NCBI GenBank assembly: GCA_037447605.1
Contig: CM074807.1
Location: forward strand, 1,922,001-1,986,000
From: Zygnema circumcarinatum SAG 698-1b
Taxonomy: Eukaryota > Plantae > Zygnematophyceae
Direction: 5' to 3'
DNA: 64,000 nt
Shown: one piece after another, positions 46,036 through 54,334 of the stretch
Layout: the number at the start of each line of letters is the position of its first letter
Position numbering within the stretch: the stretch's first letter is position 1
Translations under genes and position numbers: made by a program
Notes under the pieces: model-generated
Told to the model about the DNA's origin: nothing
What the model saw: the letters and a program-made list of their open reading frames with translations, nothing else
Database searches by the model: none

Positions 46036-49000
46036 TTACCGCGCAACGGGAGAAAGACATGGAGAGGAAGCCTGACTCCCGGAACTCTGAGAATTATCAG
46101 GATCTAAATGCTGTCGGACAACTTTCTCAAGTGCCGCCTTGCCTACTGGCTTTGCCAAATAATCCGTCATTCCCGCCTCCAAACACTTCTCCCTGTCTCC
46201 TTTAATCGCGTTGGCAGTCTGCAGCTCAAACGCACGTGGGAGCTCTCATCTAACCAAAATATGCCACATGATTGCCCAAGTTCAAGAGAGATTCATGTAC
46301 AGACAGTAAAGACTACAGGGAGGCATTTGCATTCATCAGGGTAAGGAAGCGAGGAATCTAGATGACGCTTATCACTCACCAATGCAACAATCGGCAGTGG
46401 AGAGTGCCCTTCTCTACCGCTAGCCTCCATCTCACGGATTCTCCGAGTGGCAGTCCATCCATCCATCTCTGGCATCTGAGTGAGGCAAGCCATAGCAGGC
46501 TTAGCTAGAAGCAAACAGCAGGTCAGTGCTTAAGAAGGATGGGAGAACAGCCACAACGTTCGAGTTGAGGTTCGTAGAGAGAGTACCTGACAGTCCATGA
46601 GGACAAGGTTGTAGGTCATGCGCTGCACCGCAGAAACAGCCTCCAGGCCGTTGTTGGCAATGTCCACTGTGGCCCCCATGGACTGCAACATACACTGCGC
46701 CACCTTCTGGTTGATCTGTTCATAGCGCCACCCCAACTATTCTCCATCAGAGAGGCGATCTTAACGCAGCCCAACGCGAACACTTGCAAAAGATACTGGG
46801 CCGGATGATTCCAGCTTGCAGGATGAGGTTAACGATGACCGCCTGGATGACGAAAGGTGGGCGTGGATTGAAGGATCAAGACGCATTCCAACGTGCTCGA
46901 AATCATATGGACAACAGGAGGTCGTTTCAACTAGCGCGGTGCTGTATTTAAGCAGGAGATTAGTGGAAAGGATCACGTGTTGCTAGTTGAGACAATGACG
47001 GGTCCTATATGACGTATGTGAAGCTGCAAAAGGGGAGAGCATCAGCATACATGGTTGTCCTCCACAAGAAGGACTCGCCCCCTTATCAGCGTGCTCTCCT
47101 TCCGCCGTGAACTCCTCTGCGAAGCCATTGCAAGCCTGCTCCGCACCTGCCCAGAGCGTGTGATCTCTGCGAGGGAGGCTTGGCGGGCCTGCACAGCGCC
47201 CTCCAGGGCCTGCAGGAGCGCCTTCGGGCGAACCTGGTCACAGGAAAAAAAACAGCGTAACAAGGAGTCCACAAATCAAAACACATTCGAAGGTCAAGTG
47301 GAATAATTTGCTCTATCAAGCAATTTGCACAGTTTAAAAAAAAAAAAAAGGGAATGCACACACAATGCAAACCTAACAAACCTATTTGAAGGGGGATTGA
47401 TCTGTTAATATTCGAAAGGAAAAACTACACAGGATCTTACGAAACGAGAATTTCTAAGACTGGGTCAGGGTTAGGTTTGTGGGAACGACTTTGGACAAGG
47501 GTTAGCTAACTGCATGCTCCTATAAATACTGTAACACATTCACTTTTTTTGAACTGACCTTAACAATGACGACAAGGACCCATGTTCGAGGAGTCTCACC
47601 ATGGGTTTGTGCAGCAACCACGGCTGCGGCTCCATGGCGCTCAGCCTATCCTTGAGCTCGTGCTCTCCCTTTTGCAGGCGGCCGAGCAGCAGCACCACTC
47701 CGCACCGCTCTCCCAGCCCTGCCAAGGTCCTGCAGACCTGCTGCACATCCAGATGGGCGGTCCTCGACCAGTCCACAATCACCACATCTGCCTCCTGTGC
47801 CTCCCTCTCTGGGTTTTGGCTGCTTCTCATACCAACGGGAGAAGTAGCATGTGCTCCCGCGTATTCCATACTATTTCGAGGACTTCGATAGAAGAGGGGA
47901 GAGCAGGGGGATAGGCTTTCTGGAGTAGTGGCATCCGTCCATAGAGCACCGACGCTTCCCTCCTCTGGATTACAAATGGAGAGTGTGTGCTGCACACCCC
48001 AGTTCGTCAGCTGCACAGAGATAGCTCTGTTTGTCACCTGCAGTAGCAAAGACGCCAACACCAAACGCTTTGGTCAACTTCATAGTATTGGCCGCAAACA
48101 CAGGTCCTCCCCATCACTCACCAGCCAAGACATTCAAGAATGGACGAAGCCATTACCTGCGAAGGCCCGGCCACGAGGATGCGCGCTTTCCTTACATCCT
48201 CCGCCACCACCAGCTCCTCAGGGCGCTCCATCACACTGTCCTCTCCGCCGGTTTGGTCGGGGGGGAGGCTGAGGCCCGGGTGCTGGGCAGGGAGCTTCAT
48301 CGTGAAAGTCGTGCCTCTGCCCTCATTGCTCGTGAACCATATGCTGCCCCCCATTAGCTCCACTAGCTGCTTACAGATGGCGAGACCGAGACCCGTACCT
48401 GAGATGGAATGATACGAAATCGTCACAAAGTCATTAACAATAATCACACCGCAAACTGCACACGTAAAGTACAGACGCTAACAGCGTGGACCTTCAAATG
48501 CAGTGACACTTTGTGGCACTAGAGTTTGTGCAGCAGACGTTGCTGTTATCCGAACAAAGGCACCACAGTCAACAGCGCACATGCGAAACCCACAGCAGGC
48601 AGAGTGATCTGCAACAGAACTCCATCCAGAAGCCCACATTGGAGGAAAGCACGTGGCCCAAAATATCATGCAGATGTCTGATACAGAGAAGAATTAAACC
48701 GAAAAGAAATCCCAGCATTCTATCTACCACACCGAGTACGCATCACCATTCGCTAATACGAGTAATTGCAACTGCTGGCAGAACCGGAACAGGCAGCCTC
48801 AAAAACTGCAGGGGGTGAATTCTGAGTCTAATGCCTAGCGAAAAATCTCTCAGAATTTTTGACGATCCTGAGCTGTTTTGTTTAGCTGTAAAAAAGGGGG
48901 GAAAACTAGAGTGGGAGATTAACAATTTCCCGACACCCTAGCTCTACATATTTTGCATTTCGCTTGCCGGTTACTCTGGCTAATTTGCATTGCCTAAGTC

Positions 49001-52000: not shown

Positions 52001-54334
52001 GTCCTTGATGTGAAGCAGTGGTACGAGACGATGCTCCTCACTGCCTGCCTCGCTGTTTATGCCGAACATGGAGCGTGCAGATAGGTTCATGGAGGTCACA
52101 TGTCCGTCTTGGGCGATTGACAGGATGCCTTCTCGCACTGTCTACAGCCGCCCTTCCCGTACCCGCAGTTCCAATGACCTTTTTGGTAACCAGGGAAAAA
52201 GGAAAAGTAAAGTTGCCTGCAAATGAGGCGTGAGGACAGTGTCCTGGGGTGCACCTGAACCACGCGAGAGAGGTGCATCTCCGCCTCCAAACGGCGCTTT
52301 CGCTCGTTTGTTGCGTAGATCATCTGAGCCACGGTCACGGTAAGCGGCTCTATCTCCTTTACCAGCTGCTCATCATACCCCCCTGGCCTGTTTGCAATAC
52401 CAAACATGCCCGTCATCTCACTCCCTGAATCCCAACCATCATGCTCCCACCCCCCATCAGCCTCCAGCCTTACCATGTCACACCAGCTGCGCTGGTGGAG
52501 ACTGGTGCCTCAGGTGCCGCGCAAGGACTACAGCCAAAAACTGAAAAAAAAAAAAAGCGTGGCAACTTTATCTTGTCCGTTTTCTTCCAAGATGCCCGGG
52601 AGTTGCTAAATTTCTATCGAATGAAGTGTGATAAACTTGACTTCTTAACTTGCTACATTACTCGGTTAAAAGTTATCACTTCCAGGTCGCAAGGTCAGAA
52701 TCGAGTTTGCGCCATTAGCCCTCAGAACAAACGTGTTCTGATCTAGATGGTCTAGTCCATGTATAGCTTGTCTTATGGTGAGCTTTACACGATGCGTGAT
52801 TGCTCTGACCTGCCATCTGAATTACTCCACATCGACCAGAATTTCTGCCTCAAAGCGCCACCTCATCACCTAATTCCGCATTTTTCAAACTCGACACATT
52901 GCAGGGCTCACTGTCCAGCAACGGTACAGCTATTCAGGAGCATAATCAGCCGACTCGGGTGCACAAATGTACAGTGTGTTTCCAGTTTTAGACAGCGGAA
53001 TCCACATGCGCATGTGTCTGCTCACCGGTGTAAAGAGGCATCCCAAGAAAGTTGTGCATGGGAGGGTGGCCGGGCGGTATGCCGGTGGAGCGCGGGTCAG
53101 ACTTGGGGTCATTGCTGATCACCCGCAGGCCGGTGGTTAGAACGGCCCCGAAGAGGGTCTGCATGTTGGTGAACTCAAGCCCCTTTGGAGCCGTCTCAGC
53201 AAACCAGCGCCGCAGCTCAGGGGTCCATGAGATGTTCGTGATGGCATGGATCTGCAGCCATTCATGTCTTTGACAGCCTGTCAGCTGCAGGGATGTCTAA
53301 CACAACAATTCGATTAACAAAAGGTGCGCGACCTATGCAGCTCTGTTATGGGGTGAAAGCACGAGACACGGGAGGAACTGCCAGATAAGCTGCATTGGTG
53401 TGGGCGACTCAAGACAGAGACATGCAAGTCAAACACGAAAGGAGACGTATCCTTTTGCTGATAGCCGTCTACAAGGATACTTGATTGTCGAGAGCAAAAT
53501 GCGTTCAGATTCTGGTCGCTTTTCACGAATTTGATGGATTTTCAAAGCGTGCCTCTAGGAAGGCGACCTGTTACTGTTCTGACTGTCCACCAACGCTCTT
53601 GGAGTAATTGTTGAGTCGAAGCTGATTGCAGCATAGGTTGCATGCACCATAACATTTCACAACATGGAATATGCAGGCTCACCTTAAGGTATGGTGCACC
53701 ATCGTCCTTCACCAGAGAGCTGCCAATGAAGCCGTACTCCGACTGAGTGACATCCAGCAGTGCAGAGAGCATGACTTCAAACACCTGGTTTTGACCCTGC
53801 GTCCAAGAACCAATTCCTTTTTCATGTGATGAGGTCTTCAACGCCAGACAGGAGAAAAGGCAGTTACTCAGCTCTTAACCACCACCATTTTTCTAGACAT
53901 GCGCCCACTGATAACAACGGCATGCTTGAAGCCCCTCGAGATTAAGCCCGAACTGGATAACGAGTGCCAGAAGATCAACTATTCTTGACATTTGTGAAAT
54001 GCAGCAAGTGGGTAGTGCACACCTGGTCGATAAAGTAAAGCTGGTGCACGCGTGTGATGGCCTCGAGAAGGTGCTTCTGGATGCCCTGCGAATCCTGGCA
54101 AGGGCGCGCAGTTGGAGTCCAAAGGGGCGGCTCGACTTCGACAACGCTCACTGACTCGTCTATTTCCTCGTCCTTCACAACCTCAAATGGCTCTTCCACG
54201 AGCTTTTCAGCGGCGTCCATACCGACCTTTTCCTCATCAATAATATGTGGATTTTCATGAGGGCTAGTTAAGGTTGGGGTGATTTCTTTACCAAAACGAA
54301 GGCATGACCCTCCTCTACAAGCTCCTTGCCCCAT
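46036..54334 (-). CDS. Soluble hybrid histidine kinase, GAF-PAS-PAS(PAC)-HisKA-HATPase_c-degenerate REC-REC, about 1200 aa, 18 exons; 5' end uncertain
   Basis: Phase-consistent exons: 54023-54334, 53683-53796, 53026-53251, 52255-52424, 51908-52141, 51701-51841, 51468-51580, 51089-51250, 50579-50736, 50066-50292, 49802-49924, 49119-49467, 48157-48398, 47600-48037, 47051-47233, 46587-46715, 46380-46475, 46036-46218. Kinase boxes: H-box [19 protein letters not shown]-box [11 protein letters not shown]1 DTGIGI, F-box [10 protein letters not shown]2 GGTGLGLAI. Receiver motifs LLVEDN, VLMDCQMPEMDG and AKP. No hydrophobic transmembrane stretch was seen. Confidence 0.93.

Follow-up and report, generated by a model that had tools for sequence, protein, structure and literature searches.

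In a window of 64,000 nucleotides (nt) of the Zygnema circumcarinatum SAG 698-1b genome (contig CM074807.1, positions 1,922,001 to 1,986,000, of the GenBank assembly GCA_037447605.1), the minus strand carries an intron-rich gene for a predicted soluble hybrid histidine kinase with a GAF-PAS-PAS sensor region. Structure, expression, relatives and probable origin of this gene were analysed, and all positions given below are those of the window.

The kinase gene and its transcript

The gene was modelled by joining minus-strand open pieces according to GT-AG splice sites and reading-frame continuity. The initial annotation had proposed a complete 18-exon gene of about 1200 residues, and the rebuilt model has identical ends and encodes 1192 residues (Table 1). 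The coding sequence of 3579 nt, stop codon included, starts with the ATG at 54334 and is interrupted by 17 introns, all of the GT-AG type and 87 to 720 nt long, intron 5 being the one of 87 nt. Upstream of the start codon the frame is closed by a stop at 54445-54443, with no other ATG in between, assuming that the transcript is unspliced there.

The gene is transcribed and spliced. In five public runs from the same organism, 49-60% of the words sampled from the 8.4-kb stretch were present, which is approximately its exonic share. RNA-derived contigs from four public runs (two studies) were compared with positions 48390-54389, covering exons 1-12. Joints in the contigs of all four runs removed introns 1-11 to the exact base, the 87-nt intron 5 included, and at the donor of exon 12 the RNA contigs ran on into the sequence of exon 13. 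The RNA data confirmed the predicted exon structure over these introns. In one RNA contig of 4956 nt the lengths of the pieces fitted exons 1-12 to the base and left room for the remaining 1271 nt of coding sequence together with about 0.9 kb of 3' untranslated region and at least 0.5 kb of 5' leader; the length of this contig is that expected of the whole mRNA.

Pfam scans were run exon by exon on the in-frame exons, and the order of the domains in the protein is GAF_2, PAS, PAS_3, HisKA, HATPase_c, pseudo-receiver and true receiver. The GAF_2 domain contains a histidine residue, His204 (codon 53068-53066), inside the motif G-I-P-P-G-H-P-P. PAS A is co-linear with the PAS domain of bacterial homologues, and PAS B, which is more than 70% identical to its Closterium counterpart, is followed by a coiled linker to the kinase. 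The H box HEIRTP of HisKA includes His544 (codon 50272-50270). The N, G1 (DTGIGI), F (FRQF) and G2 (GTGLGL) boxes were all found in HATPase_c, with a low-complexity insert of about 60 residues separating the N from the G1 box. The C-terminal receiver, 46-55% identical to bacterial receivers, possesses the residues E1054, D1055 and K1155 and the phospho-acceptor D1098 (codon 46595-46593). All five intact boxes and the canonical terminal receiver, as described by the initial annotation, were located in this motif check. Its statement that transmembrane, CHASE and ethylene-binding modules are lacking also agreed with our analysis: no transmembrane segment was predicted, the highest Kyte-Doolittle hydropathy over 19 residues being 1.24, and neither a CHASE nor an ethylene-binding domain was found in the protein.

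Table 1. Position of the kinase gene, its exons, the encoded domains and the neighbouring genes within the window
Feature	Position	Strand	Basis or remark
Whole coding region, 18 exons, 1192 residues	46036..54334	-	Exon chaining, RNA contigs and orthologue alignment
Exons 1-6	54334-54023, 53796-53683, 53251-53026, 52424-52255, 52141-51958, 51870-51701	-	
Exons 7-12	51580-51468, 51250-51089, 50736-50579, 50292-50066, 49924-49802, 49467-49119	-	
Exons 13-18	48398-48157, 48037-47600, 47233-47051, 46715-46587, 46475-46380, 46218-46036	-	
N-terminal region, residues 1-85	54080..54334	-	Acidic; not conserved; N-termini of orthologues longer and unrelated
GAF_2 with preceding helix, residues 86-275 (end of exon 1, exons 2-4)	52255..54079	-	Pfam GAF_2 on exon 3, E 7e-7
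PAS A, residues 276-392 (exons 5-6, divided by intron 5)	51701..52141	-	Weak Pfam PAS_8, PAS and PAS_9 matches
PAS B (PAS_3, 'S-box'), residues 393-520 (exons 7-9)	50628..51580	-	Pfam PAS_3 on exon 8, E 3e-10
HisKA dimerisation and phospho-acceptor domain (exon 10)	50066..50292	-	Pfam, E 1e-22
HATPase_c (exons 11-13)	48289..49924	-	Pfam on exons 12 and 13, E 4e-10 and 6e-12
Receiver-like pseudo-receiver, residues 836-1000	47600..48201	-	Orthologue conservation and structure model
C-terminal receiver, residues 1046-1170 (exons 15-18)	46105..47086	-	Pfam Response_reg on exons 16 and 18
LETM1-like exon, downstream neighbour	43216..44271	-	Eukaryotic-looking
Protein arginine methyltransferase-like gene, upstream neighbour	62551..63258	+	Eukaryotic-looking

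Both neighbouring genes look like ordinary eukaryotic ones, and no KAI2-like hydrolase is among them. Two further observations were made around the transcript. One contig of a single run (X2, depth 13) contained a GT..AG joint on the plus strand at 52338-52904, which skips 565 nt and falls within the kinase gene (intron 3 and exon 4); it points to antisense transcription with splicing. Shortly before the start of the gene, at 54895-55943, lies a stretch of short tandem repeats with 64% GC and the repeat units GCGGCCGG, GA/GCGA, CAGC, CCCCT and AGCC, probably within or beside the long 5' leader of the RNA contigs. Although public RNA-derived contigs contain the full-length transcript, neither of the two protein collections searched contained the kinase protein of Zygnema. 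Possible reasons are that the gene lacks an annotation or that the genome was deposited without its proteins.

Algal orthologues and bacterial relatives

The GAF exon, used as the query of an exhaustive HMMER search, yielded 2924 matches, headed by a partial Closterium protein and, in second place, by a fragment of 75 residues from the Logan contig L029; an exon-level word search with the same exon returned a single 75-residue fragment. Contig L029 is eukaryotic genomic DNA that encodes the same N-terminal helix, GAF domain and PAS A. Three exons of the contig (114, 226 and 170 nt) equal Zygnema exons 2-4 in size, with introns at the same places, and five of its intron positions match those of the Zygnema gene. 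At L029:2122-2559 the 87-nt intron 5 is missing and the PAS A loop is longer at that spot, whereas Closterium appears to retain this intron.

The Closterium protein P0113 (1510 residues), which ranked 113th among the GAF-exon matches listed, was picked out by its identity over the whole GAF domain and was the only close full-length match among the 150 best GAF matches. A word search seeded with its GAF-to-HisKA region revealed five Closterium orthologues (examples from this genus are CLOM_g16275 of strain NIES-68 and an 'unnamed protein product' each of NIES-64, NIES-65, Yama58-4 and Naga37s-1) and one of Mesotaenium endlicherianum (ME000090S10197), as well as further Closterium relatives, namely the paralogue P0287 and the fused model P0284. 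Among the 120 best matches of this search (at least 321 bits), the algal proteins were followed by weaker matches that were bacterial wherever they were named. In the databases the orthogroup consists of unnamed predictions only, none of which has been studied.

The Zygnema model aligned with the Closterium and Mesotaenium proteins over residues 76-1170 (about 1100 residues, pseudo-receiver included) with 49-55% identity, and the order of the domains from GAF to receiver is the same. In contrast, the N-terminal extensions of these orthologues are long, of low complexity and unrelated to the N-terminus of the Zygnema protein. The latter begins with MGQGAC (54317-54334, minus strand), which fits a generic N-myristoylation pattern with cysteines nearby and would, if real, contradict the description of the protein as soluble. 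This candidate was set aside: the motif was not present in P0113 or in contig L029, the N-termini being unalignable, and the match probably arose by chance.

At the locus of Closterium NIES-65, the annotation places 12 exon ends at positions where the Zygnema gene has introns, and the ends of tblastn segments suggest that 16 of the 17 introns are common to both. The intron between exons 10 and 11 is present in Zygnema but not in Closterium. Some Closterium sequences showed irregularities of their own. The loci L030:13000-31100 and L028:9300-11800 contain several extra, only slightly diverged exon-like copies (of exons 2, 3, 7 and 10) within introns, due either to duplication of exon fragments or to an assembly artefact. 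At least one Closterium gene model, P0285, reads through the last intron, and P0284 (Closterium sp. Naga37s-1, 2360 residues), which joins a kinase relative to an armadillo-repeat sequence (PF00514), is likely a fused annotation of two genes.

The region between the catalytic domain and the C-terminal receiver (residues 836-1000) is conserved in all orthologues. Searches of PDB and Pfam with its sequence gave no identification, the Pfam family Receiver_CRE1 was not among the matches at E values up to 1, and hhalign comparison with true receivers was weak (probability 14%, beta3 region only). The fold predicted for exon 14 as a single sequence reached a predicted local distance difference test score (pLDDT) of 40, and the AlphaFold2 model of the aligned Closterium segment, built from a six-row alignment that included Zygnema exon 14, reached 84. 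The latter model displayed a five-fold beta-alpha repeat, and 38 of its 39 Foldseek matches with E values of at most 1e-3 were CheY-like receiver domains or response regulators, the exception being a fusion construct. The acidic pair is replaced by A-G in Zygnema and by S-P in Closterium, whereas Asp939 and Lys994 are kept. Because this replacement is combined with the retained Asp939 and Lys994 and with a receiver fold in the model, the middle domain is, on the modelled structure, a degenerate first receiver. Degenerate first receivers occur in many hybrid kinases. Some of the bacterial relatives likewise carry two receivers.

The sensor region resembled bacterial proteins. The GAF core exon of 75 residues matched 27 loci in bacterial genomes with 50-61% identity, which span Flavobacteriales, Nitrospinia, Thermodesulfovibrio, Cyanothece, Planctomycetes, Verrucomicrobia, Proteobacteria and others. 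The initial annotation had noted a bacterial character for the GAF and the second PAS domain; the likeness extends beyond these two domains to the whole protein. Residues 86-806 are co-linear with several bacterial GAF_2-PAS-PAS_3-HisKA-HATPase_c kinases (order determined by Pfam), the best match being P0169 from an NCBI metagenome assembly (40% identity over 722 residues, 46% in the receiver), and the other co-linear bacterial kinases are 29-36% identical to the model. A profile search with the exons aligned to bacterial full-length kinases listed 120 matches, all with at most 40% identity to the model and bacterial wherever named. The kinase core was nearest to BarA/TorS/ArcB-type hybrid kinases, under every curated cut-off. 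NCBIfam contained no model for the GAF of the Zygnema kinase, and a protein-atlas look-up returned generic kinase clusters only.

A kinase tree was calculated with IQ-TREE (quick search, LG+C20+F+G4 with posterior mean site frequencies (PMSF), 678 columns, 51 rows) from all proteins co-linear from GAF to HATPase, to which P0113, P0287 and L029 were added by hand. All eukaryotic rows formed one clade nested among bacterial kinases, with a support of 100 in the Shimodaira-Hasegawa-like approximate likelihood ratio test (SH-aLRT). The Zygnema protein stood beside L029, and the branching among Mesotaenium, Closterium and the Zygnema-L029 pair was not settled by the tree. The sister of the eukaryotic clade was P0169 (support 88), followed by a kinase of Deefgea (Betaproteobacteria; support 98); these two, and not cyanobacteria, are the best-supported bacterial neighbours. 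A FastTree of 272 GAF domains contained a clade of nine rows, all eukaryotic, with a support of 100, and two further members of this clade proved to be Closterium proteins. No supported bacterial sister was obtained in this GAF-only tree. The supports given here come from quick and FastTree searches, not from a full bootstrap.

By path length, all bacterial GAF domains were about equally far from the eukaryotic ones, the Cyanothece GAF being 11th of 263. A donor phylum named from GAF-only distances was rejected, as the cyanobacterial GAF lies at nearly the same distance as all others. The data contain nothing specific to the plastid ancestor as the donor and are compatible with that donor too. 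In our reading, the gene was probably acquired once in ancient times, or the eukaryotic proteins at least go back to a common ancestor, and it has been passed on vertically since. An ancient acquisition had already been proposed by the initial annotation, and it is borne out by the monophyly of the eukaryotic proteins and by the 12-16 intron positions shared with other streptophyte algae.

Function, origin and alternative explanations

The explanation that fits these observations best, to which we assign a probability of roughly 75%, is that the gene encodes a functional nuclear-encoded cytosolic hybrid histidine kinase which belongs to a streptophyte-algal GAF-PAS-PAS clade, goes back to a single bacterial kinase and has been inherited vertically. 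Its ancestor would have been one bacterial hybrid kinase with the order GAF_2-PAS-PAS_3-HisKA-HATPase-REC(-HPt), where REC denotes the receiver. Subsequent vertical inheritance would have been accompanied by gain of introns, and the degenerate first receiver would have been kept. In the predicted protein, the GAF and/or the two PAS domains may sense an intracellular cue, which would set the autophosphorylation of His544. The C-terminal receiver would then take over the phosphate at Asp1098, and separate HPt proteins and response regulators would receive it next.

Several points weigh against this explanation. The activity as a kinase and in a phosphorelay, the cytosolic location and the nature of the cue are predictions from the sequence. 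Exons 13-18 rest on the alignment with orthologues, in which every junction is crossed without a gap, and the RNA comparison reached exon 12. The N-terminus is provisional: the RNA comparison ended at 54389, and the N-termini of the orthologues are much longer. As to the distribution of the family, the word searches took at most 8000 candidates and the best 120-150 were listed, so that relatives in land plants or other algae could be missed; moreover, coverage of streptophyte algae in the protein collections is incomplete, because the Zygnema protein itself is absent from them.

Concerning the cue, a possible but tentative refinement of this explanation, which does not exclude it, is that the GAF domain may act as a heme-binding gas or redox sensor like GAF-A of DosS and DosT, in which His204 would ligate the iron and O2, NO, CO or the redox state would switch the kinase. 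When a profile of nine family GAFs was compared with PDB, only the GAF-A chains of DosS/DevS and DosT were matched (E 2e-4, 24 bits, 62 aligned positions). The alignment placed the family motif G-x-P-x-G-H-P-P...F-L-G-x-P on the similar proline-rich stretch G-F-P-P-Y-H-P-P-M-R-T-F-L-G-V-P of DosS. His204, present in 266 of 272 family GAFs (98%), was aligned in this weak alignment with DosS His149, as worked out from the numbering offset of the construct, and DosS His149 is the proximal heme ligand (PMC4082495). However, a match of 24 bits over 62 residues is weak, the position of the distal Tyr171 of DosS is occupied by glycine (F-G-I-A-N-R), the algal protein has a single GAF and not a tandem pair, and a conserved histidine in a proline-rich loop may be purely structural. 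We consider it rather doubtful that the GAF domains of the algal family and of the very large bacterial subfamily together represent heme sensors with His204 as the proximal ligand, and that this sensor was apparently dropped by land plants. If this were true, these proteins would represent the first case, within the plant lineage, of DosS-like kinases that sense O2/NO/CO or the redox state.

The gene could also be the algal orthologue of the moss kinases PHK1 and PHK2, in which case the PHKs of land plants would represent the same family after loss of the GAF domain. This is unlikely, but the proteins have much in common: all five domains of the order PAS-PAS-HisKA-HATPase-REC are present in that order in the Zygnema protein. 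PHKs were reported in bryophytes, lycophytes and Klebsormidium, and homologues only in early-diverging streptophytes, with five in Klebsormidium and a bacterial-like PAS (PMC6137987); a zygnematophyte PAS-kinase clade includes three of those Klebsormidium kinases (PMC13730384). On the other hand, the word GAF does not occur in the paper on PHKs (PMC6137987). No land-plant protein was among the 120 best matches of the P0113-seeded search, where a PHK lacking the GAF could score lower, and none was recognised among the 150 best GAF matches, of which 27 were looked up in a library without names; in particular, bryophyte, lycophyte and fern proteins were missing from both sets of listed matches. 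The assumption of the initial annotation that the sensor was retained in non-seed streptophytes therefore stands for the algae (Closterium, Mesotaenium and L029), but not for land plants, none of which appeared among the listed matches. The lack of land-plant proteins among these matches argues mildly against a close orthology with PHKs.

Light sensing commonly relies on GAF and PAS folds, both of which the protein has. In addition, the expression of PHKs is regulated by light in moss (PMC6137987). A photoreceptor kinase that uses a bilin bound to its GAF domain or a flavin bound to one of its PAS domains is nevertheless very improbable. No cysteine is present in the GAF (residues 86-275), the order is GAF-PAS-PAS and not PAS-GAF-PHY, and no photoreceptor structure was matched in the PDB profile search of the GAF. 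Because the GAF cysteine, the PHY domain and the NCRFL motif of LOV domains are all absent, photoreception by bilin or flavin appears unlikely from the sequence. The view that the protein contains no chromophore module at all can be kept for bilin and flavin, the signatures of which are absent, but not without reservation for heme, which the GAF may carry in view of the DosS/DosT match (E 2e-4). Finally, despite the high identity of its domains to bacterial ones, it is practically out of the question that the gene is a contaminant from bacteria, the product of a very recent transfer or a pseudogene in decay; the initial annotation had concluded so for the first two. The gene contains 17 spliceosomal introns, of which 11 are spliced out in the RNA contigs, its open reading frame is intact, its flanking genes are eukaryotic (LETM1-like and arginine methyltransferase-like), and its orthologues share the introns.

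Significance and comparison with known systems

Sixty-seven histidine kinases have been reported in Klebsormidium, and streptophyte algae possess large repertoires with unusual sensors (PMC6324907). A survey of November 2026 described abundant PAS kinases in Zygnematophyceae, with GAF among the domains on its kinase tree (PMC13730384). Because histidine kinases, PAS kinases among them, are already known to be numerous and diverse in streptophyte algae, a further gene of this type comes as no surprise. The gene belongs to an already known kind of kinase, whereas its exact orthogroup carries no name in the databases. It is a genuine, expressed and anciently domesticated bacterial-type GAF-PAS-PAS hybrid kinase gene of streptophyte algae, with a predicted kinase function and a modest hint of heme binding.

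The present analysis adds a well-supported gene model, checked with RNA, for a protein that neither of the two collections searched contains. It also defines an orthogroup whose introns are almost completely conserved across distant algae, and it offers a clear case in which an entire sensor-kinase module from bacteria was domesticated within the lineage towards land plants. The idea of heme binding could provide a function for a GAF subfamily which counts thousands of members in bacteria and is still uncharacterised. Should the family indeed be missing from land plants, a signalling input would have been lost at or before terrestrialisation.

Among known systems, the bacterial 'PAS domain S-box protein' kinases (P0169, Deefgea WP_203570602 and P0092) share with the algal proteins the co-linear sensor-kinase module and the motifs of the same GAF subfamily. 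The bacterial GAF_2-PAS-PAS_3-HisKA-HATPase_c-REC-HPt kinases differ in that they have no introns and carry a C-terminal HPt domain, which the algal proteins lack. Moreover, in P0169 a short linker leads from the kinase to the receiver, whereas the pseudo-receiver occupies this place in the algal proteins. The sensor kinases DosS and DosT of M. tuberculosis (PDB entries 2W3D, 2VZW and others) possess the heme-ligating residues His149 and His147, respectively, within a P-P-x-H-P-P...F-L-G-x-P stretch that is alike in the algal family. However, DosS contains tandem GAF domains and neither PAS nor receiver, whereas the algal kinase has one GAF, two PAS domains and a receiver.

Phytochromes and cyanobacteriochromes are distinguished by a bilin-binding cysteine and the PAS-GAF-PHY order, both absent in the Zygnema kinase. 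In the cytokinin receptors AHK2-4, too, a degenerate receiver-like domain separates the catalytic domain from the true receiver; their CHASE domain and membrane spans are absent in the Zygnema protein. The moss kinases PHK1 and PHK2 (Ryo et al. 2018, PMC6137987) are also soluble and have the order PAS-PAS-HisKA-HATPase-REC, whereas the Zygnema kinase possesses in addition an N-terminal GAF domain and a pseudo-receiver, neither of which is described for PHKs (PMC6137987).

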